DNA from: Caecitellus pseudoparvulus
Taxonomy: Eukaryota; Protista; Bigyra: Bicosoecida
NCBI GenBank assembly: GCA_965644315.1
Contig: CBFFRQ010000196.1
Coordinates: 1 to 64,000 of the forward strand
Direction: 5' to 3'
DNA: 64,000 nt
Shown here: piece by piece, positions 575 through 22,397 of the stretch
How the letters are laid out: each line of letters begins with the position of its first letter
Numbering within the stretch: position 1 is the first letter of the stretch
The notes under the pieces: generated by a model
Seen by the model: the letters and a program-made list of their open reading frames with translations, nothing else
Databases searched by the model: none
Told to the model about the DNA's origin: nothing
Program-made: the position numbers and the translations under genes

Positions 575-665
575 TTTCCAAATGTCAACCTAATCATAGG
601 TTGTGCATTGCTAACAATGCCTAATCCAGGCGCTCGTGCACCCAAGTGTGGTGTTGCACAGCGCT
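575..665 (+). promoter_or_regulatory. Conserved structured 5' leader of the element family (also 8239-8328 and 11181-11270)
   Basis: Near-identical between A and B although downstream sequence diverges. Hairpins gcattg-ctaa-caatgc, gcct-aatcc-aggc and gcgct.gtgca...tgcac.agcgc. Confidence 0.6.
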
Positions 666-794
666 AGTGCATTGCATTGGGTGCGCGGGTGAGCAGCAGT
701 GCGATTTCCGCACGCCACGCTCCCCACGCAGTGCTAAGTGCGGCTCCGGCTGGACGCTGCACCACTGCTTGCCCGAAACCATTGCTTCATCATC

Positions 795-3700
795 ATGTCA
801 TCCAAGGCCAGCCAAGTCCTCGGCGTGCTCTTCGCGGACAAGTGCCTGGAGCAGCGTGTGTCAGGGCGGCCACGAACAGGCGTGCTGACTGACATGTCAC
901 GCCGAGGGGCAGCCCGGACTTTCCAGCTCGGTGGCATGGACATTGACTGCACGGATGGCCAAGATGCATCATTTTTCGTCCGCAAGTGGCTTGGCATCTT
1001 CGGAGATGAGCTGGAGGCCGAGTTTCCTGGAGCTGCTCCTGTGATGGTGCGCGCTAATTCCGCGCTGAAACAATCCGCACCAGGGCAGACCATTCTCCTT
1101 GTCACGCTGCCGAGTGACGGTGAAGGCCCCGCCATTGCCAAGTCCCTGCGCGTTGCTGCTGCTGTGCGAGAAGACTTCATCATCATGTTGAAGGGGGGCG
1201 GCTCTGTGGGCGTGGTGTACTCCAACACGCGGCAGTTCACGTCAGAGCGCGCCAGGGTCAGCGTGATCGCCCCTCCCTCTGTAGTGAAGGTTGCTCAAAA
1301 GATCTCTGAGGCAGCAACCAACATTGCCTGTGAGAGTGGGGATGTGTCCAAGATCTTGAAGCTTGTCCATGCCCATGTCACCAACACTCACTCCATCGCC
1401 AAGCGTGCTCCAAAGCCTGTCGGACACTCCGTCTCTCCAGAAGATGACGCCTCTGTCGACAAGCTGCCAAGCACACTGCCAAAGCCCCTTGCTGAAGGCG
1501 GTCCCAAGAAGAAGAAGACACGGAGGGGCAAACGCAAGCCATCGACAAAGAGCTCTCCTCCTCGGCGCTTTGCTGAACTGTTCAAGGAGGGCGTCGTGAC
1601 TACTCGCCCCACAGCGCCCTCCCCTCCATCTGCACCCGCCGAGTCGTCAGGCCAAGCTGCTCCTTCCCCTGAACATGTCCCTCTTCCGTCCACCAGAGTC
1701 AAGCGCCCGACCTTCAGCAGATGGGACTCGCCCAGCCCACGCAAGAGACCTCCTCCCGTGTCCCCGACAGCTGCGGCACTATCGGGCAGCGGGGCACAGC
1801 CACCTCTTGCAAGTCCTGCAAACACGGCACCCACTACGCTGCTAAAACTTGCTGACTGCAGTCGCCGACCAGCACGGCTTGGACAGGCAAACCTTGACTT
1901 GGGTTCCCCCTTGCAGCAACTCCTCGCCTCTGCGCACGCGTTCCGCAATAAGGACCAACGACACTGTGTCCAGGCCTGCTTTGAAACAGCAGCAGGAGAG
2001 CCACTCTTCAATGACGATGACCTTGTCCTTCTTCAACACGCAGCCACCATCCAAGCGGCGCAGACATCCTTCTGTGCTGTGTTGAAGAAGAGCAGCGCGC
2101 GTCACCCTGGCACACCAGACTCGGAGGTCCATGCTGTCTGTGAAACAGAACCTTCCATGCCGACCACCGAGCAAGACAAGCTTGACCTCTTTCAATCGTT
2201 CCTGTACCGACATGCGCCTGATGATGCAGCACTCACCAGTGCCTGTCCACCTGTGCTCCTCCCTGGTCTTCATCTCTTGCTCACGCGTATCAACGAGGGC
2301 CATCGGGAACTTGAAGGCGGCACAGTGTCTGGACACTGCCTGGTTGATGTCAAGGCAGAGAAAGAGATGACCTCCGAGGCAAAAGTCTTTGCTGGGGTGT
2401 ACTTCGCGTTTGCTCTCAGCTTGGTTGACACTGGAGGTGTCTCCCACCTTCAGCTCATTGTCGTCAACGCTGAGAAGTCCACACTTGTACTGTGGAACCC
2501 TGACGAACCCTTCAAGAGCACCAACATTCCAATCGACGGCTGCCTGAACACACTCGACTCGATGGGCATTGAGTCTGTGTACCGTGTCTCATCCTCCCCG
2601 CTGAGTGGCAAGCCGATTCCCTTCAAAGACAGAGTGCGGCTGGCCATGCTGTCCCTCAGGTCTGACTTTCCCCCACTCCCGTTCGTAGCTGAGGACGAGA
2701 CTGTCTACCCAAAGACTCTCATCACTGGCAAGACAACACGGGTGTACCTCCCTGTAGGCCGCACCACGCGCCAACAAGCAGCTGCCGATGAGAGAGCCAA
2801 GACGGTTGACCCCATACTGTCACTCATCCCAACATCTGTACAAGTCGCCGACCAGATCAGTAGCGATGCACCCCATACCCCTGTCGGCCGCGGAAGACAC
2901 ATGACACTCGCACTTGCTGCTTGGAATGTGCACGGCTCCTGCGGCCAGTGTGTCCACGATGTCGTCACCTGTGTCCAGTCTGTGTGCAGTGCGTCGTCCA
3001 TGTTGGCACTCTGTGTCACAGAGCCTGGGGGGCACGGCCTGCTCGACACGGAAGTCATGGGCCTTGAATGCTTCCGCCCAAGCCCGCCTGATCGGCCTGT
3101 CGGGCGGAGTGAGGTTGCCTTGCTGCTTGATCGAAGACTCAATGGCTCAGTGATCCCGGGCCTCGACGTTGATGGTCGCTGCATAATTGCTTGCTCGATC
3201 CCTGCAAGCCCACAACCCATCGCCATCATAGCCACGTACGTACCCAACTGGCACTCTTGGCAGCGAAAGAAGCCAGTCGCTGATCCGGACACGAAGCTTC
3301 CGTACCGGCAAGAGGTTTGGCGGCAGCTTGAGTCTGCTGTTCAACAGCTCCGCCTCACCCACATGATTGTCATCATGGGTGACTTGAACACTCATCCAGG
3401 TGACGAAGGGGTAGGCACGTGGGGAGCAGATCACTGGGAGAACCGGACCGGCATTCCCGAGCCCACTGAAGACATCCTGCAGATGCAGCTCCTCTGCGAG
3501 CAAGGCCCACTGATCCCAGCCGGACTTGGTGGCCTGCCAACGCACAGGTATGGTCGGGCTCTGGACCACATCCTGATGACTGAGGACCTCCACAGTATGT
3601 TGAGCAGACCACTGCACATCACAACAACGTTCTCCAGCGGGACGAAAAAGAGTGCCGCTCGACTAGTCCTCAGTGACCATCATCTTGTTGCAGCAGAAGT

Positions 3701-6700
3701 CCGAGTGAAGCCTGCCAAGCGAGTGTGGACATCATCCAAGAGCCCCCATGTACAGGCGGTGCCACCCTGGTGGACCTCAGCGACAGAGGCTGGGCTGGCA
3801 GCGCAAGCGATGTTTCGAGGATCCCTCAGCTCGCGGGCCACCGCGCTCCAGACAGGCAGCGCCGCCCCGAGCCTATCCTTTCTCAACGGTGCTATCGAAG
3901 CTGCGGCTATGGACACACATCGCAAGGCCAAGACCCCACGTGACCCTCTGCCCCAGCTGAAGATGGACATCAAGGCGGCCAGCGGGCTCAAGAAGTCCAT
4001 GACTGCACGCGTGTCCAAGCTGCGGAAGACCATTGCCAAGCTGCACCGGAAGCTCGCACTTGCCACCGGTCGGCATCCTCAGCCAGACCACGCCCGTGCC
4101 ATCCGAGAGGGAATCTCCATGGCCACTGAAGAGCTACACGCCACGCTTCAATGCCGCAAGGATGCAATGCGGAAGTGCACGAGGCTTGTGAAGAAGAAGC
4201 GACATGTCACTCTGTCCAGGATCCGAGCACGCTTGAGGGAACTCGCTGTCACGGATCCCTTCACTGCCCACCAACACATCAAGCGCCTGTCAGGTCGAGG
4301 TCGTCGAGCCCGTCGAGCTCCCATCAGGTCCGTGAAGTCCATGCAGGGAGTGCTCATCTCCTCCCCTGATCTGGTGAAGGAGGAGGTTGCCAAGCAGATG
4401 TCTGGCATCCTGAGTCACAACAAGCCCAGGCCAACATCGCTGAAGTACGGGCTGGCAAGGTTCCTTCCCTCAGCCCAAGAGTCCTTCACCCCGCCAGTGA
4501 CATGGCTTCCCTCCAAGAAGCAAGTCAAAGTCCTCATGGGATCACTCAGCTTGCATCGACACCCAGGCTCTGGCAAGTTCCAATCAGAGCACATCAAGTA
4601 TGCTGGGCCAGGCTTCCAAGACATCTACTCCCAAGCCGTCATCCAAGCGTTGCAACACGGCACCTGCCCGCCAGACTACCATGCAGGCATTGGGTCACTC
4701 ATCCCCAAGAAGACGAGTGAAGCTGGGCGGCCTCGCACATACCGCTTGATTGTATGCCGCCCCCCTCCTGCGAAGCTCTTCTTCTCAGTGGCCGCTGCAT
4801 GCCTGGAGTCCTGGATGCAAACATGGGTGTCGAAGGAGCAGGCTGGCTTCACTCGACACCGCAACACGCATGAGCACATCTTGGCTCTCCAAGAGGTGAT
4901 CAAGGGCCACCTGCGACAGTCAACAGCGCCAGTGCAAGTCCTGGTACTCTTCGTGGACTTCCGGGGAGCATTCGACTCTGTGAGCCACGCAGCCATCACA
5001 GAGATCCTTGAGGCTGCCTCCCTCCCTGCGCCACTCCTGGCCGTCATCAAGGAGTACATGTCCAAGGCGACGGTCTCCATCAACACGCGCCATGGTCTTT
5101 GTCGCCCCCTTCCTGTCAGCAATGGTGTCCCCCAAGGAGGAGCTCTGTCCCCCCTCCTCTTCAAGGTTGCGATAGATGTGCTGTCGCAAAGGCTCCACGA
5201 GATGCCCCTCCAAGGCATCCAGGGAGTGGGCATCCCAACACCAGCAGGCCATGTCACCCACACCCTGTATGCAGACGACCTGGCCTGCATCGCAACGTCT
5301 GCCACGGCCTTGCACCGAATCTTCGTAGAGGTGAAGGCCATCGCTGCCCGGGTTGGCCTTGCCATCAACCCGTCGAAGTCCGGGGTCATGATCCTTGCCA
5401 ACTCCGTGCGAGGCAGCCGGACACCAGTCAGTGAAAGGAAGAAGTTGGTGTGGCGCTCGGCTGCCCTCAAAGCGGGCAGCATGCTGAAGGTTGGCACCAA
5501 GTCCATCCAACGGGTGGCCGAGTACACCTACTTGGGTGTGCCGATGTCCGAACATCCTGCCAAGACCCGTGCACTTACCCTGCAACAAGCTGGGCTTGCT
5601 TGCATCCAAGCCGGGTTCACTGCGGGCGCGCTGCTCAGTGCCACCTGGCTCGATGTGCAGCAGCGGCACCTGGTTGGGTATGCCACTGTCACGTCAGCCG
5701 CCGACTACATGCTGTCCACCCAAGCCAACAGTTCCCTGCTTCCGCTGCGCGATGTTGACCGCGGCGTCGCCCTCGCCTTGGACAGGACCCAAGTCGGCTC
5801 GCAGAGTGCACTCATGCGCCCCCACAGCTACGCCAAGCTGGCTCTATGCGGAGTCCTGCCTGCCCACATCCGCTCCACGCAACTGCGGACTGGGATGTTT
5901 GTCAAGGCTCTCCGGATGCTGCACTCGGACACCCCTCTTGCCCGAGCTCTGTGCCTGACCATCCCGCAGGCCCTTGACCTTATGCCTGCTTCGATGTCGA
6001 CGACCTTCATCGTCGACACCATTGCTGATGGAGGTCGACTCCGGGCTGCCAGTGTCCCTGCTCCGTGGGCACTGCATGCCCTCTTGGACCTCTGGCTCAT
6101 GGGCTGCATGCCAGACCTTGCACAGCTTCGGCTTGCATGTGCACCTGGCTCTGAGCATGCTGCCACAGCCCTTGCCCAAGTCCTTGCCGGACTTAAGACC
6201 ACCCCGGGCCTCCACAGGTCTGCGGTGGTTGGGGTGGCTGCCAGCGAGACGTCGTCCATGGCCGAACCCCCGGCCTTCACGGCAGACACCCCCTGGGCCC
6301 TGCGTCGCCAAGTCCTCGCGTCGTATCTTCATGTAGCCCAGGCAGTGCCGAGTGCAGCTGCCCACTACACCACCGACAGCCGAATCCCCCAAGTGCAGAA
6401 GCCCAGGCCGTATCATCTTGGGCCTGGTGCGCAGCACTTCGTGTGGCTACATCCACTGCCACACGGGGTGAACCCCCTCTTCTGGGTCTGTCCTGATGAC
6501 AGGCCCACCAGAGTGATGGTCCATCACTTCCAGACCTTACAGCTTCTTCATGGGGGGGACAGTGCCACTCTGTACGAGTGCTGTCCGATTTGCGGACTCA
6601 ACACCGATGTACAGCTGCACGTGCACATCCTGCTGCACTGCACCCACCACGAACTCACCATGGCACGCCAACACACGATGACCAAGTTCAGAGAACTGGC

Positions 6701-7361
6701 CAACAGGTCAGCTGTGCCCGAGTCCGCGGCGGGCCAAGTGCAGTGCCTGCCCATCCCCCCCAAGATCTGCCACGCCCTCCTTCGTGCCCCCGACCCAGAG
6801 CCGCGAAGCCTGCGGGACCTCGAGGTCCTCCACAGGCTCCTGCTCTGCGGGCAGTGGCCTCACCGGTGGGGGCTGGCCGACGAAGAGCAGCTTGTCTCTA
6901 TGAAAGAGGCGGCTGTCCTCTCCCACCCCCACCTCGTCCACCGTGCTGGTCCTTGCCGTGTCCGTGCCCCAGCTGTATGGCAAGACATCCTGCGCAGCGC
7001 GGTTGAGTTCACAGCAAAGGCGTGGCGGGTCACAGTCACTTACATGTTGCGTATGACCGATGCCCACCACCTTGCTGTCCAGAGGCATGCTGAGTACCTG
7101 TGGTGGGCAGTACATGGGCGCGGGGCGCCGCTGCCTGGCCGCACGCAGCCAGTGCGGTCAGCGGCCACGCGGCACACGCGCAGGCCCCGCACTCGCCGCA
7201 GGGCACGCACCTTTTTCCCTGCCAAGGCTGGCCAAGTGCCGTCCACGGAGGGCAAGGTCCAGAGGACGCTGCAGCACTTCATGGGGCCTCAGCCAGCCCA
7301 TGCAGACACTGATGGTGAGGGGGAAGGGCCCGATGGTTCCTGTGAAGAGAGCGAGGAGTAA
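795..7361 (+). CDS. Retrotransposon polyprotein (~2188 aa): N-terminal ORF1-like/putative Cys-protease region, AP endonuclease (~2901-3700), reverse transcriptase (~4560-5540), CCHC zinc knuckle (~6582-6641)
   Basis: APE motifs WNVHG, VTE, TYVP, MGDLN, PTH, LDHI, SDH. RT motifs LIPK, YRLI, QAGF, VDFRGAFDSV, GVPQGGALSP, YADD, GLAINPSKS, YLG. CCHC is CPIC-x10-H-x4-C. First ATG at 795 aligns with the B-element ATG. Confidence 0.95.
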   Translation: MSSKASQVLGVLFADKCLEQRVSGRPRTGVLTDMSRRGAARTFQLGGMDIDCTDGQDASFFVRKWLGIFGDELEAEFPGAAPVMVRANSALKQSAPGQTILLVTLPSDGEGPAIAKSLRVAAAVREDFIIMLKGGGSVGVVYSNTRQFTSERARVSVIAPPSVVKVAQKISEAATNIACESGDVSKILKLVHAHVTNTHSIAKRAPKPVGHSVSPEDDASVDKLPSTLPKPLAEGGPKKKKTRRGKRKPSTKSSPPRRFAELFKEGVVTTRPTAPSPPSAPAESSGQAAPSPEHVPLPSTRVKRPTFSRWDSPSPRKRPPPVSPTAAALSGSGAQPPLASPANTAPTTLLKLADCSRRPARLGQANLDLGSPLQQLLASAHAFRNKDQRHCVQACFETAAGEPLFNDDDLVLLQHAATIQAAQTSFCAVLKKSSARHPGTPDSEVHAVCETEPSMPTTEQDKLDLFQSFLYRHAPDDAALTSACPPVLLPGLHLLLTRINEGHRELEGGTVSGHCLVDVKAEKEMTSEAKVFAGVYFAFALSLVDTGGVSHLQLIVVNAEKSTLVLWNPDEPFKSTNIPIDGCLNTLDSMGIESVYRVSSSPLSGKPIPFKDRVRLAMLSLRSDFPPLPFVAEDETVYPKTLITGKTTRVYLPVGRTTRQQAAADERAKTVDPILSLIPTSVQVADQISSDAPHTPVGRGRHMTLALAAWNVHGSCGQCVHDVVTCVQSVCSASSMLALCVTEPGGHGLLDTEVMGLECFRPSPPDRPVGRSEVALLLDRRLNGSVIPGLDVDGRCIIACSIPASPQPIAIIATYVPNWHSWQRKKPVADPDTKLPYRQEVWRQLESAVQQLRLTHMIVIMGDLNTHPGDEGVGTWGADHWENRTGIPEPTEDILQMQLLCEQGPLIPAGLGGLPTHRYGRALDHILMTEDLHSMLSRPLHITTTFSSGTKKSAARLVLSDHHLVAAEVRVKPAKRVWTSSKSPHVQAVPPWWTSATEAGLAAQAMFRGSLSSRATALQTGSAAPSLSFLNGAIEAAAMDTHRKAKTPRDPLPQLKMDIKAASGLKKSMTARVSKLRKTIAKLHRKLALATGRHPQPDHARAIREGISMATEELHATLQCRKDAMRKCTRLVKKKRHVTLSRIRARLRELAVTDPFTAHQHIKRLSGRGRRARRAPIRSVKSMQGVLISSPDLVKEEVAKQMSGILSHNKPRPTSLKYGLARFLPSAQESFTPPVTWLPSKKQVKVLMGSLSLHRHPGSGKFQSEHIKYAGPGFQDIYSQAVIQALQHGTCPPDYHAGIGSLIPKKTSEAGRPRTYRLIVCRPPPAKLFFSVAAACLESWMQTWVSKEQAGFTRHRNTHEHILALQEVIKGHLRQSTAPVQVLVLFVDFRGAFDSVSHAAITEILEAASLPAPLLAVIKEYMSKATVSINTRHGLCRPLPVSNGVPQGGALSPLLFKVAIDVLSQRLHEMPLQGIQGVGIPTPAGHVTHTLYADDLACIATSATALHRIFVEVKAIAARVGLAINPSKSGVMILANSVRGSRTPVSERKKLVWRSAALKAGSMLKVGTKSIQRVAEYTYLGVPMSEHPAKTRALTLQQAGLACIQAGFTAGALLSATWLDVQQRHLVGYATVTSAADYMLSTQANSSLLPLRDVDRGVALALDRTQVGSQSALMRPHSYAKLALCGVLPAHIRSTQLRTGMFVKALRMLHSDTPLARALCLTIPQALDLMPASMSTTFIVDTIADGGRLRAASVPAPWALHALLDLWLMGCMPDLAQLRLACAPGSEHAATALAQVLAGLKTTPGLHRSAVVGVAASETSSMAEPPAFTADTPWALRRQVLASYLHVAQAVPSAAAHYTTDSRIPQVQKPRPYHLGPGAQHFVWLHPLPHGVNPLFWVCPDDRPTRVMVHHFQTLQLLHGGDSATLYECCPICGLNTDVQLHVHILLHCTHHELTMARQHTMTKFRELANRSAVPESAAGQVQCLPIPPKICHALLRAPDPEPRSLRDLEVLHRLLLCGQWPHRWGLADEEQLVSMKEAAVLSHPHLVHRAGPCRVRAPAVWQDILRSAVEFTAKAWRVTVTYMLRMTDAHHLAVQRHAEYLWWAVHGRGAPLPGRTQPVRSAATRHTRRPRTRRRARTFFPAKAGQVPSTEGKVQRTLQHFMGPQPAHADTDGEGEGPDGSCEESEE

Positions 7362-7996
7362 GGCGGAACGCAGGCGTGCGGGCGGGGAGTGGAACAGCCA
7401 CGCTTGTGGCCGCGTCTACCCTCCACGAGTGTCCTGACGTGATGAACCTGTGTGAAGCGTGGTGATAACCACGGTAGCCCGAAGCAGATGCCCAAGACCT
7501 TACCTTTTACTTACTACATAGCCTGCGAGTAGCAGTGGAGTGAGCGGGAGCGTGCCTCGGGCCGCGGCGCGTGTGCAGCCGCAGTGCTGCACGGCCGCGG
7601 CCCGGATGGCGGCTGACGATGAAGCAAGCTCACTCACCACGAAACCAGGGCGTGACGGGTTGAAGAAGAAGGTCCTTTTCCTTTCTGTATCCCCCTTGAT
7701 GCGCGCGATGCGCTCTGTGGCGCGGGCGCGTGTGTGCGCACGGGTGCTGGTGTGCGCGATCGAATTCCGCACCACGCACCCGGCCGAGTTCCCGCGCAGA
7801 GGCGGAGCACACACCTCATGAAGGGCGCAGAGAGGCCTATGAGGGCCACAGAGGAGGTGGGTGAGGAATTTGGATTATGATCTGTTGTCAAGACTGCGCG
7901 GATGCCTGGGTGTGCTCTGGTGTGCCCCAGGTGTCTGGCGCTGGCGGAGCAAGGGATGAAGTGTAGCGGAGGAGGGCCAAGATGATGAATTGGAGC

Positions 7997-8188
7997 GGGC
8001 AGGGACCTGCCCTAGCAAGTGGCGGCAGATATAACGGGTGCAAGCCTGTGTTTGTTGCGAATCCGCGCCAAGCGGTAGCCGCTGTGGCGTCCTACATGTG
8101 CAGAGGTGCATTGTGGGGCGCCCGTGTGACGCTCAAGCTGTACGGTGCCAAGCTGTGCCGAGGTGAAATGCATTGTGAGTTGCTAACC
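7997..8188 (+). ncRNA. Conserved 3'-terminal cis RNA structure (copies at 10966-11174, 13908-14115, 16717-16920, 16979-17186)
   Basis: About six helices with compensatory changes across four diverged subfamilies (detailed in findings). Confidence 0.75.
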
Positions 8189-8238
8189 TAACCTAACCCT
8201 AACCCTAACCCTAACCCTAACCCTAACCCTAACCTAAC
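8183..8238 (+). repeat. Interstitial telomeric tract between element A and B1 (CCCTAA with CCTAA variants at both edges)
   Basis: ctaacctaacctaaccctaa...ccctaacctaac. Confidence 0.95.
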
Positions 8239-11174
8239 TTTCCAAATGTCAAGCTAATCACAAGTTGTGAAGTGCTAACATTGCCTAATCCAGGCGCTCG
8301 TGCACCCAAGTGTGGTGTTGCACAGTGCTTGCTGGTTGGGTGGTGCGCACCGGGGCGGGGTAGTGCGAATTCCGCACACCATCGCACCGTGGCTCCCAGT
8401 TTGCGCCCTCGGTCGGGGCATGCACCTGGGATCGACATCAAAAGCATCATTGACAAGCATCATGAACGCCCAAGTGGATCAAGTCCTGGGGGTCCTCTTC
8501 GTGGAGGGGTGCCTGAAGCGCAAGCAAGTGCTCGGCCCCAGAACAGGTGTCTTCACTGACATGCCACGTCGGGGTGCCGCACGCACCTTCGAGCTTGGAG
8601 GACCCCTGCCCAAGACTGATCATGATAGTTCATCTTCGGCACGGGACATGTGGCTCGAGGTCTATGGGGAAGCCGCCGAACGGCTGATCCCAGGGCTGAG
8701 TGCGGAATTCGGCAACGCCAATGCGGCCCTGCGCCAGGGACCCACCGGATCGCCAACCATCCTCGTCACGCTCGGAAGTGAGGGTGATTCACCAACAGTG
8801 GCACGTCAACTTCGCATTCTTGCTGCTCAAGAGGACGACTTCGCCATTCGAGTCGGCCAAGGTGGGTTCGTCGCCGTGGCCTACACCAACACCAAGCAGT
8901 TCGCATCGGCGAAGGCGAAAGTGAAGGTGAAGGCCCACCCCACCGCCATCCAAGTGGCCCACCAAGTGACCAAGGAAGCAACCGAAATCGCCTGCCAGTC
9001 AGGTGATGTTGCCAAGGTCATGTGCCTCGTTAGGTCCCACTTCGACCATGGCCCCGTGCCAGCCCAAGCCGTCCGTCCCAGTGTCAGACAATCCGTCCCC
9101 TCCGAGGGTGATGCACCTGTCGACACCAAGACACCATCGACCTGGACTGACACTCAGCTCGACAAGGCACCGAAGAAGAAGAAGACCCGTCGAGGCAAGC
9201 GAGGAAAGGGCAAGTCAGCCGGACGATCCCTCACCTTCGAGGACGTCTTCATCAAGAACGTCCGGCCACCTGCACCTCGACCAACCTCACCACCTGCCAC
9301 CCAAGGCTCACCCAAAGATACCGTCACCACCCCTGTGGTGCATGCCATGTTGCCTTCATCAAGGGTGCAGCGGGGCGTCGACCGCAAGTGGCCGTCCCCC
9401 ACCCCGTCGGGCGAGGCAAGCCCCGAGGTGCACCGGTATCGGCCGTCTGCAGCAGCAGCATGGGAGGTGATCACAAGGGTGGTGCCTCTTCATGACAGTG
9501 TGCGGACACCCGAGCACCTGGCCGAGTACCCCATCAAGCCTGGCCCTCTGGCCGACCTGCTGTCATCGACCCACGTGTACTCTAACGTGGGGGGGCGGGC
9601 CTGTGTCCAGGCCTGTCTCGAGACGGCAGCAGGGGAGAGGGTCTTCGAGGCTGGGGACCTCCTCCTACTCCAGCATGCAGCCACCATCAACGCTGCCCAG
9701 CTTGCCTTCAAGCACATGGTCAGGCAGCTGGAGGGGGTGGTCAGTGACTCGTCCAGCTCGGACATCATGGACGTCGGCCAGAAGCCACCCTCCCCCTTCC
9801 GCTCAGACGGGCAACGGGTGGCCGTCTTCCGCAACATGCTGCACCAGCACTCGCCGGATGACACCTTCCTGGCCCCAGGTACACCACCAGTCCTGCTTCC
9901 CGGCCTGCACCTGCTCATCGACCGCATCAACCAAGGGTACCGTGCCCCAGCCGGGCATGATGACCTTGGCCAGGCCGGCGTCGACCCCAGCCAGGTTGAT
10001 GAAGAGGGTGACCAAGAGGGGCACCTCGACGGAGTGCTGTATGCCTTCGCACTTCGAGAGGTGTGGACCGACAACACGGCCCATCTGCAGCTCATCCTCG
10101 TCGACCATGATCGAGGCAAGCTGGTGCTGTGGAACCCCGACATCCCTGACCTCCATGACGAGCTGCCCCTGCACAAGTGCATGACCCGGCTGGCAGCCGA
10201 AGGCATCAACGTCTTGTACCGGATCTGGACCACACCCGAGGCGGGCAGTCCAGCACCCTTCCGGGACAGGCTTCGAGGGGCACTCCAGTCTCTCCGAGAT
10301 GACTTCCCCCCCCTGCCTCACAAGGCCACCGACGGCACCGTGCACCCCCAGACCCTCATCGCTGGCAAGGGCACAAGGGTGGCCATGCCTCATGGGCGGA
10401 TGACCCGACAGCAGGCCGCCACCCTGGAGGCTGAGGTCAAGGACCCCCTCAAGCGGCTGGTGCCTGAAGACGGCGAGGGTCGCCTGCCCAAGGTCAAGGA
10501 TGTGCCCCACATCTCGATCGGGCAGATGGGTGGACGCCTGATGTAAGTCACCTGTGGGGGCATACTCCCTGTGCCACACATGACTGAAGCTTTGTGTCGC
10601 GACCGACGCACATAGCTGACATCGGACATTGGAAAGTCCAACCCAACCTCACCATCACCAACCCAACATCGATACCAACACATCAGGACTCGGCTCAGTG
10701 GAAGGGGAAGGCACTTGCAGCAAGATCTGTGAGGCCGCCCCCAAACCTGAGCCGAAGGGACAGCCGGGCTGGGTCGTGTGCTTGCATCTCAGCAACACCC
10801 AGTCCGTGTCGAGTCCATATCCTCCAGCCCACACCGCCACCCAAGCCAAGCAAGTCGGGTCTCCACCCCTGGACATCGGACCGAGACGGACGAGACTGGA
10901 CTGGACGGACAAGACAAGAGTGGACCGAGACCTGGACCTACACCTCAAGACCATCCCACCGGGGCGGGCGCTGAAGCGCCAAGACAGACGGCGACTTATA
11001 CAACGGACACGAGTCTGTGCTAGTCGCAAAGCCGTGCAAGCGGTGCCGTCGTGGTGTCTGTGTCACTGCATTCTGTTGTGGCGCAGGTGGCACCACATGT
11101 CCAAGCCCAAGCTGTACCATGATGTAGCCTGCATGGAGGCAATCTGCAATGCATTGAGTAGCTAACCCTAACCC
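8239..11174 (+). mobile_element. Element B1: non-autonomous relative of A (5' end + N-terminal-region ORF + 3' structured end; no APE/RT)
   Basis: The first ~90 nt are nearly identical to A's 5' end. The ORF is homologous to A up to the APE start. It ends gcattgagtagctaaccctaaccc. Confidence 0.92.
8462..10546 (+). CDS. 694-aa protein homologous to the pre-APE region of the element A polyprotein (ORF1-like plus putative cysteine protease)
   Basis: Shared blocks with A: QVLGVLF, PRTGVxTDMxRRGAARTFxLGG, IACxSGDVxK, KKKKTRRGKR, CVQACxETAAGE, PPVLLPGLHLL, HLQLI..LVLWNPD, GRxTRQQAA. Confidence 0.88.
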   Translation: MNAQVDQVLGVLFVEGCLKRKQVLGPRTGVFTDMPRRGAARTFELGGPLPKTDHDSSSSARDMWLEVYGEAAERLIPGLSAEFGNANAALRQGPTGSPTILVTLGSEGDSPTVARQLRILAAQEDDFAIRVGQGGFVAVAYTNTKQFASAKAKVKVKAHPTAIQVAHQVTKEATEIACQSGDVAKVMCLVRSHFDHGPVPAQAVRPSVRQSVPSEGDAPVDTKTPSTWTDTQLDKAPKKKKTRRGKRGKGKSAGRSLTFEDVFIKNVRPPAPRPTSPPATQGSPKDTVTTPVVHAMLPSSRVQRGVDRKWPSPTPSGEASPEVHRYRPSAAAAWEVITRVVPLHDSVRTPEHLAEYPIKPGPLADLLSSTHVYSNVGGRACVQACLETAAGERVFEAGDLLLLQHAATINAAQLAFKHMVRQLEGVVSDSSSSDIMDVGQKPPSPFRSDGQRVAVFRNMLHQHSPDDTFLAPGTPPVLLPGLHLLIDRINQGYRAPAGHDDLGQAGVDPSQVDEEGDQEGHLDGVLYAFALREVWTDNTAHLQLILVDHDRGKLVLWNPDIPDLHDELPLHKCMTRLAAEGINVLYRIWTTPEAGSPAPFRDRLRGALQSLRDDFPPLPHKATDGTVHPQTLIAGKGTRVAMPHGRMTRQQAATLEAEVKDPLKRLVPEDGEGRLPKVKDVPHISIGQMGGRLM

Positions 11175-11180
11175 AAAAAC

Positions 11181-14115
11181 TTTCCAAATGTCAAGCTAAT
11201 CACAAGTTGTGAAGTGCTAACATTGCCTAATCCAGGCGCTCGTGCACCCAAGTGTGGTGTTGCACAGTGCTTGCTGGTTGGGTGGTGCGCACCGGGGCGG
11301 GGTAGTGCGAATTCCGCACACCATCGCACCGTGGCTCCCAGTTTGCGCCCTCGGTCGGGGCATGCACCTGGGATCGACATCAAAAGCATCATTGACAAGC
11401 ATCATGAACGCCCAAGTGGATCAAGTCCTGGGGGTCCTCTTCGTGGAGGGGTGCCTGAAGCGCAAGCAAGTGCTCGGCCCCAGAACAGGTGTCTTCACTG
11501 ACATGCCACGTCGGGGTGCCGCACGCACCTTCGAGCTTGGAGGACCCCTGCCCAAGACTGATCATGATAGTTCATCTTCGGCACGGGACATGTGGCTCGA
11601 GGTCTATGGGGAAGCCGCCGAACGGCTGATCCCAGGGCTGAGTGCGGAATTCGGCAACGCCAATGCGGCCCTGCGCCAGGGACCCACCGGATCGCCAACC
11701 ATCCTCGTCACGCTCGGAAGTGAGGGTGATTCACCAACAGTGGCACGTCAACTTCGCATTCTTGCTGCTCAAGAGGACGACTTCGCCATTCGAGTCGGCC
11801 AAGGTGGGTTCGTCGCCGTGGCCTACACCAACACCAAGCAGTTCGCATCGGCGAAGGCGAAAGTGAAGGTGAAGGCCCACCCCACCGCCATCCAAGTGGC
11901 CCACCAAGTGACCAAGGAAGCAACCGAAATCGCCTGCCAGTCAGGTGATGTTGCCAAGGTCATGTGCCTCGTTAGGTCCCACTTCGACCATGGCCCCGTG
12001 CCAGCCCAAGCCGTCCGTCCCAGTGTCAGACAATCCGTCCCCTCCGAGGGTGATGCACCTGTCGACACCAAGACACCATCGACCTGGACTGACACTCAGC
12101 TCGACAAGGCACCGAAGAAGAAGAAGACCCGTCGAGGCAAGCGAGGAAAGGGCAAGTCAGCCGGACGATCCCTCACCTTCGAGGACGTCTTCATCAAGAA
12201 CGTCCGGCCACCTGCACCTCGACCAACCTCACCACCTGCCACCCAAGGCTCACCCAAAGATACCGTCACCACCCCTGTGGTGCATGCCATGTTGCCTTCA
12301 TCAAGGGTGCAGCGGGGCGTCGACCGCAAGTGGCCGTCCCCCACCCCGTCGGGCGAGGCAAGCCCCGAGGTGCACCGGTATCGGCCGTCTGCAGCAGCAG
12401 CATGGGAGGTGATCACAAGGGTGGTGCCTCTTCATGACAGTGTGCGGACACCCGAGCACCTGGCCGAGTACCCCATCAAGCCTGGCCCTCTGGCCGACCT
12501 GCTGTCATCGACCCACGTGTACTCTAACGTGGGGGGGCGGGCCTGTGTCCAGGCCTGTCTCGAGACGGCAGCAGGGGAGAGGGTCTTCGAGGCTGGGGAC
12601 CTCCTCCTACTCCAGCATGCAGCCACCATCAACGCTGCCCAGCTTGCCTTCAAGCACATGGTCAGGCAGCTGGAGGGGGTGGTCAGTGACTCGTCCAGCT
12701 CGGACATCATGGACGTCGGCCAGAAGCCACCCTCCCCCTTCCGCTCAGACGGGCAACGGGTGGCCGTCTTCCGCAACATGCTGCACCAGCACTCGCCGGA
12801 TGACACCTTCCTGGCCCCAGGTACACCACCAGTCCTGCTTCCCGGCCTGCACCTGCTCATCGACCGCATCAACCAAGGGTACCGTGCCCCAGCCGGGCAT
12901 GATGACCTTGGCCAGGCCGGCGTCGACCCCAGCCAGGTTGATGAAGAGGGTGACCAAGAGGGGCACCTCGACGGAGTGCTGTATGCCTTCGCACTTCGAG
13001 AGGTGTGGACCGACAACACGGCCCATCTGCAGCTCATCCTCGTCGACCATGATCGAGGCAAGCTGGTGCTGTGGAACCCCGACATCCCTGACCTCCATGA
13101 CGAGCTGCCCCTGCACAAGTGCATGACCCGGCTGGCAGCCGAAGGCATCAACGTCTTGTACCGGATCTGGACCACACCCGAGGCGGGCAGTCCAGCACCC
13201 TTCCGGGACAGGCTTCGAGGGGCACTCCAGTCTCTCCGAGATGACTTCCCCCCCCTGCCTCACAAGGCCACCGACGGCACCGTGCACCCCCAGACCCTCA
13301 TCGCTGGCAAGGGCACAAGGGTGGCCATGCCTCATGGGCGGATGACCCGACAGCAGGCCGCCACCCTGGAGGCTGAGGTCAAGGACCCCCTCAAGCGGCT
13401 GGTGCCTGAAGACGGCGAGGGTCGCCTGCCCAAGGTCAAGGATGTGCCCCACATCTCGATCGGGCAGATGGGTGGACGCCTGATGTAAGTCACCTGTGGG
13501 GGCATACTCCCTGTGCCACACATGACTGAAGCTTTGTGTCGCGACCGACGCACATAGCTGACATCGGACATTGGAAAGTCCAACCCAACCTCACCATCAC
13601 CAACCCAACATCGATACCAACACATCAGGACTCGGCTCAGTGGAAGGGGAAGGCACTTGCAGCAAGATCTGTGAGGCCGCCCCCAAACCTGAGCCGAAGG
13701 GACAGCCGGGCTGGGTCGTGTGCTTGCATCTCAGCAACACCCAGTCCGTGTCGAGTCCATATCCTCCAGCCCACACCGCCACCCAAGCCAAGCAAGTCGG
13801 GTCTCCACCCCTGGACATCGGACCGAGACGGACGAGACTGGACTGGACGGACAAGACAAGAGTGGACCGAGACCTGGACCTACACCTCAAGACCATCCCA
13901 CCGGGGCGGGCGCTGAAGCGCCAAGACAGACGGCGACTTATACAACGGACACGAGTCTGTGCTAGTCGCAAAGCCGTGCAAGCGGTGCCGTCGTGGTGTC
14001 TGTGTCACTGCATTCTGTTGTGGCGCAGGTGGCACCACATGTCCAAGCCCAAGCTGTACCATGATGTAGCCTGCATGGAGGCAATCTGCAATGCATTGAG
14101 TAGCTAACCCTAACC
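11181..14115 (+). mobile_element. Element B2: tandem copy of B1 (period 2942 bp)
   Basis: All ORFs in the track repeat identically at +2942. It ends gagtagctaaccctaacc. Confidence 0.92.
11404..13488 (+). CDS. Identical copy of the B1 694-aa protein
   Basis: Translation identical to 8462-10546. Confidence 0.88.
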   Translation: MNAQVDQVLGVLFVEGCLKRKQVLGPRTGVFTDMPRRGAARTFELGGPLPKTDHDSSSSARDMWLEVYGEAAERLIPGLSAEFGNANAALRQGPTGSPTILVTLGSEGDSPTVARQLRILAAQEDDFAIRVGQGGFVAVAYTNTKQFASAKAKVKVKAHPTAIQVAHQVTKEATEIACQSGDVAKVMCLVRSHFDHGPVPAQAVRPSVRQSVPSEGDAPVDTKTPSTWTDTQLDKAPKKKKTRRGKRGKGKSAGRSLTFEDVFIKNVRPPAPRPTSPPATQGSPKDTVTTPVVHAMLPSSRVQRGVDRKWPSPTPSGEASPEVHRYRPSAAAAWEVITRVVPLHDSVRTPEHLAEYPIKPGPLADLLSSTHVYSNVGGRACVQACLETAAGERVFEAGDLLLLQHAATINAAQLAFKHMVRQLEGVVSDSSSSDIMDVGQKPPSPFRSDGQRVAVFRNMLHQHSPDDTFLAPGTPPVLLPGLHLLIDRINQGYRAPAGHDDLGQAGVDPSQVDEEGDQEGHLDGVLYAFALREVWTDNTAHLQLILVDHDRGKLVLWNPDIPDLHDELPLHKCMTRLAAEGINVLYRIWTTPEAGSPAPFRDRLRGALQSLRDDFPPLPHKATDGTVHPQTLIAGKGTRVAMPHGRMTRQQAATLEAEVKDPLKRLVPEDGEGRLPKVKDVPHISIGQMGGRLM

Positions 14116-16074
14116 GCCACGGAGCGGCGGAAGCTCATCTGGCGATCCCGCTGGTTGAGGTCAGGGCAGTCCATGAAGGTCAAGGGGACACCCATCCAAC
14201 GCACGAGCACCTACTCGTACTTGGGTGTCCCCCTGTCTGAAACTATCAGCCGAACCCGACTGCTTGCCACGAGGCAGGCCACTCTGTCCTGCACTCGGGC
14301 TGGGTTCGGCTGCGGTGCCCTCCTCAGTAGTGCCTGGCTGAGTCCGATCCTGAAGCAGCGGATCGGCACTGCCTCCATCAACAGTGCCGCCGACTACATC
14401 TTGGCGTCCCAGGTCAGCAACTCGGTGCTGCCTTTGCGGGACGTCGATCGTGGACTCGCCATCGCCTTCAGCAAGGCCCAGCTGGGGATGCAAAGCTCGC
14501 TGGCACGCATGCACAACTATGCGAAGCTTGCTGTGTGCGGCGTCTTGCCAACACACATCCGGGCGACAAAACTCCGCAGCAACATCTTCATGAAGCTGCT
14601 GAAGAATGTCCAAGTGCCCACCCCCGTGGCCAAGGCGCTGTCCATCAGCCTGCGCCAAGCCCTGGACCTGCTCCCCTCCCCCCTGGACATGGCCGGCATC
14701 TTCCTGGCCAATGTCCGCCTCGACAGGCCAGGCGCCGGAGGCATCCCAGATCCATGGGCCTTACACGGTCTACTCGACCTCTGGCTCCTTGGATGCCTCC
14801 CTGACCGCGCACGCCTGGAGGCTGTGTGCCTGGAGCCGCCGCCTGACTCGGCCCCAGACGCACACGGGGTCGACATCACCGCTGGGATGGACCCCGCCCC
14901 CCCCAAGATCCAGCTGCTTGGACTCGCGGCGGCGGAGTCCTCGGATCTGTCCGCGGCCCCCCAGTTCCCGGACACCACCCCCTGGGCCACTCGGCAACGC
15001 GTCGTCGCCTCCTTCCTTCATGTGGCCCAGACGGTCAAGTGCAGTGCAGTTGGCTACACTCCCACGGGGGAGATGAAGGCCACCAGGCGTCCGAAGGAGT
15101 ACCACATCGGTGTGGGCGCTCGCTTCTTCGCCTGGCTGCACCCGATCCCTTCCTCTGTGAACCCAGTCTTCTGGGTCCACGAAGGCGATCAGGAGAGACG
15201 TGTGAAGGTGCACTTGTGGCAGACGCTTCAAGTGTTCAACGGGGATGACACCCCGACACTGTTCAGCGCCTGCCCCCTGTGCCACAGCGTCTCATGGTGC
15301 AGCCTGCAGGAGCACGTTCTCTTGGACTGCCCCCACCACGCCCTGGTCCCTGCGAGAAGGTCCGCCCTGTCCGAGGTGCGGACCTTCCTGTCCAGATCCA
15401 ATGATGCAGTGAGGGGGGTCATCAACTGCCAGTACCTTGAAGTACCCCCCTCACTGCTGGATGCCGTCGTCCACGCCGACGAAGGCCGCTTGTTGGGCCG
15501 CCCGTGTCGCCTGCTGCTGCTGCGACTGCTGCTGTGCGGCCAGTGGCCCCATCGGTGGGGCCAGCCCCCGGCACAGCAGCCTTGGAGTCCCGAGGCAGCC
15601 GCGGTCCTGAGTAACCCTCATGTCACTCTCCGCGGCTCCTCGGGTCCACTCCGCCCCCCCAAGTACTGGCGCGAGGCCCTGGTAGCCGCCACGGGCCTCG
15701 CGGTATCTGCGTGGGACGCGGTGGTGACGTGCATGCTCAGCCCTACCTCTCGTGCTGACCGTCACATCCAGAGGCACGCCCGGTACCTCTGGTGGGCGGC
15801 GCATGGACGAACGTGTCCTCTTCCAGGTTACTCGGCTCCTGATCCGAGTACTGTGAGGAAGCATGTGCGGGACGTGAAGACGCGGCGCTTCGAGCGCACT
15901 TACTTTCCTGTCAAGTCCCCTCGTCGGCCGCCTCGCTCCTTCACGAGGCAGGCCACCTTGCTCGACTTCAGGCTGGCACGGCCGGAAGTCCACGAGGAAC
16001 CTCCGGCACCGTCGATGTCATCCTCGGCGTCGTCCTCTGGGTCGTCCTTGAAGTGTCCATCTGACTCTGAGTAG
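14116..16074 (+). pseudogene. 5'-truncated but still open polyprotein C-terminal part (RT thumb, CCHC CPLC-x10-H-x4-C, PIP-like tail)
   Basis: Colinear with A: PLRDVDRG, PWALHxLLDLWLxGCxPD, VNPxFWV, LLLCGQWPHRWG, QRHAxYLWWA. Confidence 0.9.
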
Positions 16075-16922
16075 CGGGCGATGTGTGCAGGACGCGGCGC
16101 GAGGCGGTGCAAGCTTACGGCGTGGCGTGGTGACAACCACGGTCGTGCCTGAGCGAAGTGCGAGAGCAGGGTGATGTGATGTTCTTGATCGATGATGAAA
16201 CCTGTGGAAAGTTGGAGAATGTGGTGAAGAATATGCCCAGTATACTCACATGTTGGCTCGGGGTCCACGTGCAGCTCGAGATAGATTCCTGTGACGGAGC
16301 GCGCGGAATTTGGCAGGGTGAACACGCGGGCGCGCGGGGAAGCGTTGCAGGCGGGGCGCACCGGTCCTCTGGGCCTTGATTGATGAAGTGACTGGATAAT
16401 CTGTGAAGAAAGGGAGGTGTTCTTGGTGTTCTTGGTACGCGGGGGGGCGTTGTTCCGACGGTGCGCGCTGTACCACCGGCGTGGTGCAGTGCAACACCGT
16501 CGTGAAACGCCACCCGAAGGCGGCCACCGAGGCTCAGGACAGCGCGCAGTGGCCCCAGGCACACGTTCAGTGCCTGGCAAGGGCCAGGAGAAGCGGGGGG
16601 TTTCTGAATTATGAAACGAAGTGTGGACTTGGACGAAGCAGGAGTGGACCCGGCCCCCTCTGGCTCAGCCGACTGAGCCGAGAGGGCGCGGGAGGGACAG
16701 TTCAGCACGTATGGGCGGGCGCGGGCGCGCCCTAGCAAGCGGCGGCTTATACAACGGACGTATGTCCGTGATGGCTGCAGACCCACGAGAGTGGGAGCCG
16801 CTGTGGTGCCTACTACAGTGCATTCGTGTGCTGTGGTACGCAAGGCACCACGAGTGATGCCCAAGCTGTACCGTGCAAGAGTGTGCGGAGGCAAGTTGCA
16901 ATGCATTGAGTGAGCTAACCCC
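14116..16922 (+). mobile_element. Element D: 5'-truncated diverged family member (end of RT, C-terminal domain, 3' UTR)
   Basis: Begins in frame at ATERRKLIWRS (A: VSERKKLVWRS), just before YSYLG. It carries the shared 3' structured domain and ends gcattgagtgagctaacccc. Confidence 0.92.
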
Positions 16923-17197
16923 CCAAGAGACCGAGCTCTGGCCCCCTTGCGGGCATGTGGACCTTCTTTCGAAGGGGCGGGCGTTGAAACGCCCTAGCGA
17001 AGCGGCGGCTTATACAACGGACTCACGTCTGTGCTGGCTGCAGATCCATTTACATGGTAGCCGCTGTGGTGTACACCGGAGCGCACTCGTGTGCGACGGT
17101 GAGCAGGACACCACGTGTGATGCCCCAGCTGCACCGCGCCTGTGGCAAGCGTGGAAGCGAATTGCAATGCATTGACTGTCTAACCCCTAACCCCTAA
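16923..17197 (+). mobile_element. Element E: ~270-bp 3'-terminal remnant of a fourth subfamily, ending in ctaacccctaacccctaa
   Basis: Contains gccctagc..agcggcggcttatacaacggac..tgcaatgcattga, homologous to the 3' ends of A, B and D. Confidence 0.88.
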
Positions 17198-17849
17198 ACA
17201 GCGGGTCCCGCGCACTGCCTCCATCGTTGTGGGCGGTGTGTGTGGAGGGCGGGCTGTCACACTGCACGGCCTTGCCGCCCACCACCTCCACGCCACCCAC
17301 GAGCAGGGTGGACTTGCCGACCAAGCGAGCAGTGCGCTGGGCGAGGTGGGGCGGGATGGTGTTGCGGGAGCTGGGCGGCGTCGTGGCGTGCAGCCCCACC
17401 GCCGTGAACAGCAGCACCGGCGCCAGAGCCGTGCCCTGCTCCCTGCTCAGTGCCCCGTCTGCCAGTTGCAAACAGGCTGCCCGGGCCAGGGCGAACAGGC
17501 GCTCATCCCCAGCCAGCCACGCCGCCACGCCAGGCGGTGGGGGGCAGCTCCCCACACTCGCCACTGCCACGGTGTTCAGGACGGCGCCCAACCACCTGAC
17601 TGCCGGCTCCCGTACCTGCCACTCTCGCCGTCGCGGTTGAACACAACGATGCTGTCTCCAGCCGCCCCCGCTACACGTTTGCCCTGCGAAAGTCGCCGTG
17701 GAAGGTGCAAATATGGTTGCCACGTCGGCTGCGCCGGCACGCACGTCCTCTGACACTGCCACGTGCGTGATGAAGGTGCTGCCCGAGAGGAAGGCAGTGC
17801 CTTTCGCCAGCTCCACTTCGTTAGTGCCAGTGTTCTCCACGTGCACCAT
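17197..17849 (-). pseudogene. Broken distal copy of the UTP20-like fragment, truncated at the retroelement/telomere-repeat junction
   Basis: Matches 21742-22397, but the frame stops after ARDPLF where the intact copy continues WLLQRLS. Confidence 0.8.
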
Positions 17850-21245: not shown

Positions 21246-22397
21246 CTACCGCCTCCGCAGCACCTTCAGCTTGTCCATGCGCTTCGCCACGTGGTGCTTC
21301 TTCGCCTGCGCCTTCTGGCTCCGACACTCTGCAGCTGCTGGCGGGTTCACCACCGCCTCCTGCGCCACCTGCTTCGCCCGCCGCTCCTTCGCTGCCGCCC
21401 TGGCCCGCCGCTCGCTGTTGTAGGCTGTCAAGAACACATTTGCACCCATGGCACCCTGCACACCCTCCAAGACCTCGGATGCAAAGGCGCCTGCCTCTGC
21501 TGCAGCGGCCGCCTGTTGTGCCTGCTCTGACCAGGATGGCGCGTCGGCCAGGCGGGGGTCGCTGGCCACGTGCTCTGCCGCCTGCACAATGCGGAACACT
21601 ACCCGCGCCACCGGCACCACGTAGCGCTGCAGGTCCGCCTGCGGCAAGTGCCCAGCCATGCCCCCGAACACGTTCAGCGCCGTGGTGGCCGCCGGCCCGC
21701 CCTGCTGCACTGCCGTGTTGCTGAGGCGCTGCAGCAGCCAGAACAGCGGATCACGTGCACTACTGCCGTCGTCATCTTGGGCGGTGTGTGTGGAGGGCGG
21801 GCTGTCACGCTGCACCGCCTTGCCGCCCACCACCTCCACGCCACCCACGAGCAGGGTGGACTTGCCGGCCAAGCGAGCCGTGCGCTGGGCGAGGTGGGGC
21901 GGGATGGTGTTGCGGGAGCTGGGCGGCGTCGTGGCGTACAGCCCCACCACCGTGAACAGCAGCACCGGCGCCAAAGCCGTGCCCTGCTCCCTGCTCAGTG
22001 CCCCGTCCGCCAGCTGCACACAGGCTGCCCGGGCCAGGGCGAACAGGCGCTCATCCCCAGCCAGCCACGCCGCCACGCCAGGCAGTGGGGGGCAGCTCCC
22101 CACACTCGCCACTGCCACGGTGTTCAGGGCGGCGCCCAGCCACCTGGCTGCCGGCTCCCGTACCTGCCGCTCTCGCCGTCGCGGTTGAACACGACGATGC
22201 TGTCTCCAGCCGCGCCTGCCACGCGCTTGCCCTGCGAAAGTCGCCGTGGAAGGTGCAAATATGGTTGCCACGTCGGCTGCGCCGGCACTCACGTCCTCCG
22301 ACACTGCCACGTGCGTGATGAAGGTGCTGCCCGAAAGGAACGCAGTGCCTTTCGCCAGCTCCACTTTGTTGGTGCCAGTGTTCTCCACGTGCACCAT
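21246..22397 (-). pseudogene. Fragment resembling the C-terminus of UTP20/DRIM (U3 snoRNP HEAT-repeat protein), with an apparently unrelated N-terminal part
   Basis: LFWLLQRLS...ASEVLEGVQGAMGANVFLTAYNSERRARAAAKERRAKQVAQEAVVNP matches the remembered UTP20 C-terminal pattern. Only ~380 codons are present, versus >2000 aa for a full gene. Confidence 0.6.

Follow-up and report, generated by a model that had tools for sequence, protein, structure and literature searches.

Head-to-tail arrays of telomeric LINEs beneath TTAGGG repeats at chromosome ends of Caecitellus pseudoparvulus

Telomere-specialised retrotransposons are known from a handful of lineages, and the literature searched here lists only insects, Giardia, Chlorella, a few fungi, rotifers and an anole lizard (PMC10088271, PMC12857005). 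In Drosophila, the Jockey-clade elements HeT-A, TART and TAHRE form head-to-tail arrays found only at chromosome ends, with the 3' end toward the centromere. Autonomous and Gag/ORF1-only members coexist, the ORF1-only member is the most abundant, 5' ends are lost by erosion or truncation, and APE is retained in the RT-bearing members (PMC5537684, PMC6581046). The R1-clade elements TRAS and SART of Bombyx are APE-type LINEs confined to telomeric repeats in a host that has telomerase, and their recognition by the RT requires a 3' UTR structure (PMC4700185, PMC7265360). The endonuclease-deficient Penelope-like elements Athena and Coprina carry short reverse-complement telomeric repeats at the 3' end, which let the RNA attach to exposed G-rich overhangs, and are restricted to termini (PMC8557442). 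The fungal MoTeR1/MoTeR2, FoTeR and Cnl1 are telomere-inserted non-LTR elements of TTAGGG organisms with telomerase, and cluster with CRE/SLACS (PMC12857005). Giardia GilM/GilT and Chlorella Zepp are LINE-like elements accumulated at telomeres in tandem or nested arrays, next to telomerase repeats (PMC10088271).

We analysed a window of 64,000 nt from C. pseudoparvulus (assembly GCA_965644315.1, contig CBFFRQ010000196.1, positions 1 to 64,000), together with the other contigs of the 30.6-Mb genome, here denoted by C and a number. The initial annotation had described five related non-LTR elements lying head to tail under a telomerase-type cap, and this layout was confirmed with small coordinate corrections. 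The contig starts with a (CCCTAA)n cap (1-574), read on the C-rich strand, with 94 overlapping perfect telomere 12-mers against 0 expected in shuffles. All five elements are on the + strand, with their 5' ends facing the cap. None has poly(A), and each ends in ATGCATT-N5-8-CTAAC plus 12-57 nt of telomere-like tail. No flanking direct repeats were found.

Element A (575-8182) is a full-length autonomous LINE of 7608 nt. Its 5' UTR (575-794) begins (A)CTTTCCAAATGTCAA, and is followed by a single intact ORF (795-7361) of 2188 aa. The ORF1-like N-terminal region (795-2864, residues 1-690) has an RRM-like domain, a basic and proline-rich linker, and a candidate papain/Josephin-like domain. It gave no Pfam hit, and the fold leads are weak. 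The APE-type endonuclease domain (2910-3680, residues ~706-962) had a Pfam PF03372 (Exo_endo_phos) score of 27.2 bits, just over the 24.5-bit cut-off, and carries the motifs WNV, TEPGG, YVPN, GDLN, PTH, LDHIL and SDH. The catalytic motifs (N, E, D/N, D and DH) are all present, and are conserved in seven divergent lineages sharing under 35% identity. The reverse transcriptase domain (4701-5540, residues 1303-1582) was recognized as RVT_1 with an E value of 2.9e-29. Downstream of the RT there is a CX2CX10HX4C (CCHC-type) motif (6582-6641), conserved between A and D, and a structured 3' UTR RNA module (7995-8182) ends in ATGCATT-N8 just before CTAACC. No Pfam hit was found in the 620 residues after the RT. 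At least 12 full-length copies of A, with 98-100% identity, sit at other contig ends.

A 57-nt telomere-repeat tail (8183-8239) joins A to B1 (8240-11161). B1 is a full-length 2.9-kb element with an ORF (8462-10546) of 694 aa from the first ATG, encoding only the ORF1-like part, 41% identical to A residues 1-703. After a 20-nt junction, CTAACCCTAACCCAAAAACT (11162-11181), follows B2 (11182-14103, ORF 11404-13488), which is 100% identical to B1. B is not a derivative of A, its 3' module being only 55% identical to that of A. A 12-nt junction, CTAACCCTAACC (14104-14115), leads to D (14116-16914), a 5'-truncated copy of 2799 nt that starts inside the RT C-terminal region. D matches A residues 1558-2167 at only 43% and is therefore a truncated copy of another family, not of A. 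It is a recombinant, with an X-family body (93-98% identity) and the last ~200 nt 100% identical to the Z-family 3' module. After another 12-nt junction, CTAACCCCCCAA (16915-16926), element E (16927-17179) is a 253-nt 3' fragment of the W family, containing the 3' module only, 95% identical to C19_5. The innermost tail of 21 nt, CTAACCCCTAACCCCTAAACA (17180-17200), marks the boundary to ordinary subtelomeric DNA.

The same architecture was found genome-wide. In a fully scored search with the RT core, 55 of 56 matches lie within about 21 kb of a contig end in the telomere-ward orientation. The exception is a fragment at C23:10669-11163, in the opposite orientation 10.7 kb from a contig start; C208:38599-38865, on the minus strand, is a second odd place. 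In ten chromosome ends the 3'-end motif occurs 46 times on the telomere-to-centromere strand and 0 times on the other. There are at least eight related families (A, B, X, Y, Z, W, U and V), occurring essentially only at chromosome ends, with the sense strand continuous with the C-rich telomere strand. The autonomous members encode one long polyprotein with an ORF1-like part, APE, RT and a CCHC motif. B is the most abundant and youngest family, with at least 47 near-identical full-length copies at contig ends. It is very unlikely that these arrays are an assembly artefact. Many short contigs (5-60 kb) begin with such arrays, and several copies carry frameshifts that may be homopolymer errors. 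However, more than 60 contig ends, including 11 contigs of 0.2-1.5 Mb, show this architecture with different junctions, and two independent public assemblies (L066 and L068) show the same element-telomere joints. This assessment was made without read data. A metagenome contig holds a full element, 52% identical at the protein level, with (CCCTAA)n on both sides.

In the collections searched, which included no named LINE reference set, the RT clade has almost no relatives. Sequence searches gave only an isolated cluster, with only 7 proteins reaching E<1e-30 among 1.8 billion representatives, and the nearest solved relatives were generic, namely R2Bm (9e-17) and L1 ORF2p (5e-12). No similarity to GilM/GilT or Zepp above the general LINE background was seen in these searches. 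Compared with the Drosophila elements, a CTAAC telomere-complement tail takes the place of oligo(A) at junctions, one fused ORF replaces gag plus pol, and telomerase is present and caps every array with TTAGGG repeats, while in Drosophila-type telomeres the arrays replace telomerase repeats. TRAS and SART have two ORFs and cut a defined site inside long (TTAGG)n tracts, whereas here there is a single ORF with no Pfam domain in residues 1-702, and the proximal tracts are almost always under 60 nt. The Athena and Coprina elements have PLE-type RTs without an endonuclease and with hammerhead ribozyme motifs. Here the RT is LINE-type with an intact N-terminal APE, and an Rfam search of the array found no ribozyme family or other match. 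MoTeR, FoTeR and Cnl1 carry a C-terminal restriction-enzyme-like endonuclease, while here the endonuclease is APE-type and lies N-terminal to the RT. The system combines features previously seen separately: polarised arrays with an abundant ORF1-only member as in Drosophila, an Athena-like telomere-complement 3' end, a TRAS-like intact APE and structured 3' UTR, and full coexistence with telomerase.

Every family shares a conserved 5' leader and a ~190-nt 3' RNA module, followed by an element-encoded CTAA(C) end. The module has 44 pairs, 24 of them with compensatory change, which was reached by 0 of 500 shuffles, and 92% of cells are paired, against 27-46% in slid controls. Minimal tails of 4-5 nt (CTAA, CTAAC) directly abut non-telomeric DNA, showing that the elements carry their own 3' end.

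Both A and B show 5' truncation series with a common 3' end. The B copies have truncation points at 242, 1024, 1181, 2422, 2717, 2755, 2822 and 2899, pointing toward retrotransposition rather than plain duplication. We also considered that these are old subtelomeric repeats, now spread and homogenised mainly by recombination or break-induced replication between ends, with little or no current retrotransposition. In its favour, C18 and C30 share two identical junctions and the same element order, C32 and C151 share an A|B junction with the same filler, and nine B copies on six ends are identical apart from one G-run length difference. This reading is quite unlikely, because 42 of 44 junctions in the ten ends are unique, the A and B ORFs are intact, and recombination alone does not create new tails or stubs. 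Further, age is graded along the arrays, young copies being distal and old ones proximal. The rank in the array correlates with identity to copies on other ends (Spearman -0.45, p 0.006), the median identity being 99.99% distally and 96.1% proximally.

The tails argue against random insertion into the cap. From 44 tails in the ten ends, 43 are 57 nt or shorter (median 13 nt), while caps are 400-5356 nt, with a P of 1.6e-35 under a uniform nick in a 400-nt tract. A TRAS/SART-like mechanism, in which the APE nicks the G-rich strand of duplex repeats at a fixed position (after GGTTAG) and target-primed reverse transcription inserts the element inside an existing tract, without telomerase being needed to rebuild the distal side, is less likely but not ruled out. 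In its favour, the APE motifs are intact in every lineage, indicating an endonuclease under selection, which a purely end-attaching element would not obviously need. The register of the 3' junction is constant, with CTAAC always first, and the sense strand runs with the C-rich telomere strand, as is probably the case for TRAS. Three junctions carry long tracts (113 nt, about 413 nt in C5 and 547 nt in C44), L066 and L078 also have long repeats on both sides, and a 32-nt B stub lies between long telomere tracts. These fit insertion into duplex repeats as well as addition to a normal-length end. On the other hand, tails of 4-8 nt join directly to truncated older elements, with no telomere tract to cut.

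With respect to telomerase, we detected a TERT gene, with the RBD at 79 bits plus an RT domain. An 8-nt filler, GGCAAGGA, lies between CCCTAACC and three different element 5' ends, one of them in an independent public contig, and is hard to explain without telomerase acting on the cDNA end. The only other genomic copy of the 14-mer reads CCCTAACCGGCAAGGA, at an internal intergenic site (C13:457817-457832, minus strand), with about 0.014 chance matches of that 16-mer expected in this genome. This locus is a candidate telomerase RNA. It reads CCCTAACC, which would template GGTTAGGG, but an 8-mer is common by chance and this alone is weak evidence. The candidate had no Rfam match, its fold is no more stable than shuffles (z -1.09), and no read-through of its 5' flank was found in telomeres.

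Together, these results support the reading of the initial annotation, that a polarised, telomere-restricted APE-LINE system with an ORF1-only member adds successively under a telomerase-made cap, more strongly genome-wide than in the window. We consider it probable, in the absence of RNA and read data, that these LINEs attach to chromosome ends and are recapped by telomerase. In the inferred mechanism, the RT binds the 3' module of its own or a partner RNA, and the CUAAC(C..) 3' end pairs with the 3' end of the G-rich strand, mostly at ends that have lost almost all of their repeats. That 3' OH primes reverse transcription outward, giving full-length or 5'-truncated copies. Telomerase then extends the cDNA 3' end and rebuilds the TTAGGG cap, sometimes copying a few bases beyond its template, while erosion, abortive reverse transcription and recombination between ends reshape the arrays. 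Priming from the overhang rather than from an APE nick remains an inference, and annealing of a telomere-complement tail to the G overhang is an idea already described for the endonuclease-deficient Penelope-like elements (PMC8557442).

Apparently all LINE copies in this compact genome are telomeric, and many are identical, showing that they were active very recently. More tentatively, retrotransposon addition could be a regular second arm of telomere maintenance that works together with telomerase, with every LINE in the genome belonging to one deep-branching, telomere-dedicated clade. Its RNAs would be copied onto ends that have lost nearly all their repeats, and telomerase would then heal the cDNA end, leaving occasional copies of telomerase-RNA bases next to the template. 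This would make the system a living intermediate between telomerase-only telomeres and the Drosophila transposon telomere, and would mark the telomerase RNA gene of a lineage where none is known.

The fused ORF1 region with a possible papain-like domain is a new LINE protein architecture, although the whole-protein AlphaFold model of the B protein was poor (pLDDT 44) and feature hits at 0.76 were at noise level. A frameshifted B subgroup differed by a single G7/G8 homopolymer, possibly a sequencing error. Extra hits of CCCTAACCGGCA were 24-32-nt B stubs and not longer fillers, and the 3' stubs of 24 nt begin exactly at GGCAA, which matches the flank at the C13 locus.

The contig began with 574 nt of perfect (CCCTAA)n, followed by five elements on the + strand: A (575-8182), B1 (8240-11161), B2 (11182-14103), D (14116-16914) and E (16927-17179). 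Each element ended in a conserved ATGCATT-N5-8 block, followed by CTAAC and a short telomere-like tail, which was 57 nt long after A, 20 nt after B1, 12 nt after B2, 12 nt after D and 21 nt after E. No element had poly(A) or flanking direct repeats. Ordinary subtelomeric DNA with ankyrin-repeat genes started at about 17.2 kb.

Element A carried one uninterrupted ORF (795-7361, 2188 aa), with Pfam RVT_1 (E 3e-29) and Exo_endo_phos domains. The endonuclease domain had every APE catalytic motif: WNV, TEPGG, YVPN, GDLN, PTH, LDHIL and SDH. These motifs were kept in seven lineages sharing as little as about a third of their residues, showing that the nuclease is under selection. Downstream of the RT there was a CX2CX10HX4C motif, and no RNase H or other Pfam domain was found. 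B1 and B2 were 100% identical and encoded only a 694-aa protein, 41% identical to A residues 1-703 and stopping where the APE domain would begin. D aligned to A residues 1558-2167 at only 43%, indicating a 5'-truncated copy of a different family. E was the last 253 nt of yet another family.

The ORF1-like region had no Pfam match. The model of the whole protein was poor (pLDDT 44). Nevertheless, its N-terminal domain (B residues ~39-140, 8564-8881) gave human L1 ORF1p RRM entries as the top three of 48,161 chains (Z 5.8, 90 aligned, rmsd 3.5), although from a low-confidence model. A separate model of B residues 360-620 (9539-10321; 1899-2684 in A) reached pLDDT 70. Its long-coverage matches were all papain-like cysteine peptidases, including Josephin-type deubiquitinases and clippases (Z 7.1-5.8), and C39 peptidase domains, staphopain and streptopain (Z 6.0-5.2). 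Foldseek returned only non-significant hits (best E 7e-3), but of the same kind. Cys (in CVQAC), His (in AHLQL) and Asn (in WNP) were invariant in five families. All scores were below the level that proves a fold, and the potential peptidase is only a lead. A protease could release the ORF1 part from the fused polyprotein, possibly by self-processing.

The window is part of contig C196 of a 30.6-Mb assembly with 215 contigs (designated here by C and a number). In this assembly, A had at least 12 full-length copies at 98-100% identity, plus a 5'-truncation series. B had at least 47 full-length copies at about 100% identity, and its truncated copies started at positions 242, 1024, 1181, 2422, 2717, 2755, 2822 and 2899 and shared the same 3' end. 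B copies fell into two groups, differing only by G7 versus G8 in a homopolymer run (region of 9599, B position ~1360), which shifts the frame and is either a propagated frameshift variant or a sequencing error. D-like copies were also numerous. Every + strand hit was within about 24 kb of a contig start. A search with the RT core scored all 95 candidates and gave 56 strong matches, of which 55 were terminal and had their 5' end pointing outward. The exception was a 208-aa RT fragment at C23:10669-11163 (-), in the opposite orientation and 10.7 kb from a contig start. The only other family fragment not obviously in a terminal array was a 267-nt 3' fragment at C208:38599-38865 (-), 19.6 kb from a contig end. 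RT identities fell in tiers of 100, about 70, about 60 and about 37%, showing that several families coexist. No LINE-type RT was found away from contig ends.

We assembled the outer 20-36 kb of ten chromosome ends: the window, all of C12, and C18, C19, C30, C32, C41, C44, C53 and C67. In these ends, the 3'-end motif occurred 46 times on the telomere-to-centromere strand and never on the other strand. Full-length elements began at (A)CTTTCCAAATGTCAA, directly after telomere repeats. The families recognized were A (7.6 kb), B (2.9 kb), X (7.75 kb), Z (7.8 kb), Y (8.9 kb), W, U and V. The 5' leader was conserved (575-640 in A and 8240-8300 in B1), with 83% identity between A and B, against 41% for the proteins. 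It contained three telomere-like CTAA[CT] motifs in its first 60 nt, which on the cDNA 3' end read as TTAG-like motifs and might help capping or telomerase priming.

The constant polarity means that the first cDNA strand is continuous with the G-rich strand and grows outward. If elements were nicked in at random positions of even a 400-nt tract, the very short proximal tracts would have a probability of 1.6e-35. Identical B copies carried tails of 6, 8, 12, 16, 17 and 20 nt, indicating that the short tails are original and not decayed. Tails of only CTAA or CTAAC abutted truncated older elements, and therefore at least these bases belong to the element's own RNA. Distal copies were young and deeper copies were older: the median identity to a copy on another end was 99.99% at ranks 1-2 and 96.1% at rank 4 or beyond (Spearman correlation -0.45, p 0.006). 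Together with the telomerase-RNA-like fillers described below, the short tracts, the element-encoded CUAAC end and the age order favor attachment to chromosome ends that have lost nearly all repeats, followed by telomerase recapping, although this inference was made without read or RNA data. The same mechanism has been described for endonuclease-deficient Penelope-like elements (PMC8557442). On the other hand, the conserved APE and a few insertions with long repeats on both sides keep a TRAS/SART-like nick model alive (PMC4700185), and both routes may be used.

Of the 44 junctions, 42 were unique. Two were shared by C18 and C30, which had the same element order (B, X, X), indicating a segmental copy between ends. 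C32 and C151 also shared an A|B junction. Recombination between ends thus also moves array segments and clearly contributes, but it cannot create the unique junctions. An assembly artefact is very unlikely, given the independent assemblies.

A TERT gene was present on C77, with a 1389-aa open frame, a Telomerase_RBD (79 bits) and an RT domain. At three different 5' junctions the telomere repeats ended in the same phase, ..CCCTAACC, and were followed by the 8-nt filler GGCAAGGA before unrelated element sequence: (i) the normal B 5' end at C32:11714, also seen at C151; (ii) an A copy truncated at position 7156, at C32:14795; and (iii) an element in an independent public assembly (L068). The only other occurrence of CTAACCGGCAAGGA in the genome was internal, at C13:457817-457830 on the minus strand. 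This site (C13:457817-457832 (-), within L070:1296-1545 (-) of the extracted sequence) read gagtCCCTAACCGGCAAGGAgtggag, in a gap of about 290 nt between ORFs, with a T6 run about 215 nt downstream. A 16-mer match is expected about 0.014 times by chance in this genome. CCCUAACC is exactly a 6-nt template plus 2 alignment bases for TTAGGG. We read the fillers as telomerase starting on a non-telomeric cDNA end, a few bases 3' of its template. The locus remains only a candidate telomerase RNA gene, having no Rfam match, no unusual folding stability (z -1.09) and no read-through of its 5' flank in telomeres. Two further observations fit this reading: the C32:14795 junction shared GTG with the bases after the filler, and two independent 24-nt B stubs began at GGCAA, the same as the first five flank bases.

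B 3' fragments of 24-32 nt were found inside telomere tracts at C140:2146, C177:9385 and C187:1947 (L076:1502, L077:1502 and L078:1502 of the extracted sequences), and a 13-nt X stub was found at C53:485-497 (in L062), embedded in or directly under telomere repeats. Such B stubs are what abortive reverse transcription, or terminal erosion followed by telomerase healing, would leave.

The last ~190 nt of 16 diverged copies, including an element from a metagenome, could be aligned and folded into a common multi-helix structure of 44 pairs. Of the cells, 92% were paired, against 27-46% when partners were slid. Compensatory changes were found in 24 pairs, against 1-12 in slid controls, and no shuffle out of 500 reached the observed covariation. 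No Rfam family matched. B kept the structure, but shared only 55% of the bases with A and 68-69% with the D/Z type. B is therefore not a derivative of A, and its RT donor is unknown. D was a recombinant: its body, up to about 16515, was 93-98% identical to X, and its last ~200 nt were 100% identical to the Z-family 3' module, showing that 3' modules are exchanged between families. By analogy with SART1 and R2, we infer that this module is the recognition handle of the RT, and that it allows trans-mobilization of B. In addition, a self-complementary CAATGCATTG (core ATGCAT in A) was found 6-8 nt before the CTAAC end in every family (11143-11155, 14085-14097, 16895-16907 and all other 3' ends). 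It could pair two RNAs, for dimerization, hitch-hiking of B or template jumping.

A word-indexed search found one close relative, 52% identical, on a marine metagenome contig, which held a complete element with (CCCTAA)n on both sides. An exhaustive search of 1.8 billion representatives found only seven proteins below 1e-30. Among them were a 3724-aa protein, on a contig starting with telomere repeats, and a 2150-aa protein (34% identity over APE and RT), on a coral metagenome contig (L067, 7899 nt) without telomere repeats at either side, suggesting that not every member of the wider clade need be telomeric. Everything else was at generic LINE level.

The system works like Drosophila HeT-A/TART and like Athena. 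However, it is a member of neither, nor of the CRE-clade MoTeR/FoTeR/Cnl1 groups or, probably, the R1-clade TRAS/SART, because defining features of each were tested and were not fulfilled. No description of such elements was found in the literature searched.

In the ordinary subtelomeric DNA further inward, three tandem 114-nt repeats (68-100% identity) were found at 20624-20965, inside the 781-aa ankyrin-repeat ORF (18653-20998). A 239-nt duplication linked 17214-17452 and 21762-22000, at 95% identity.
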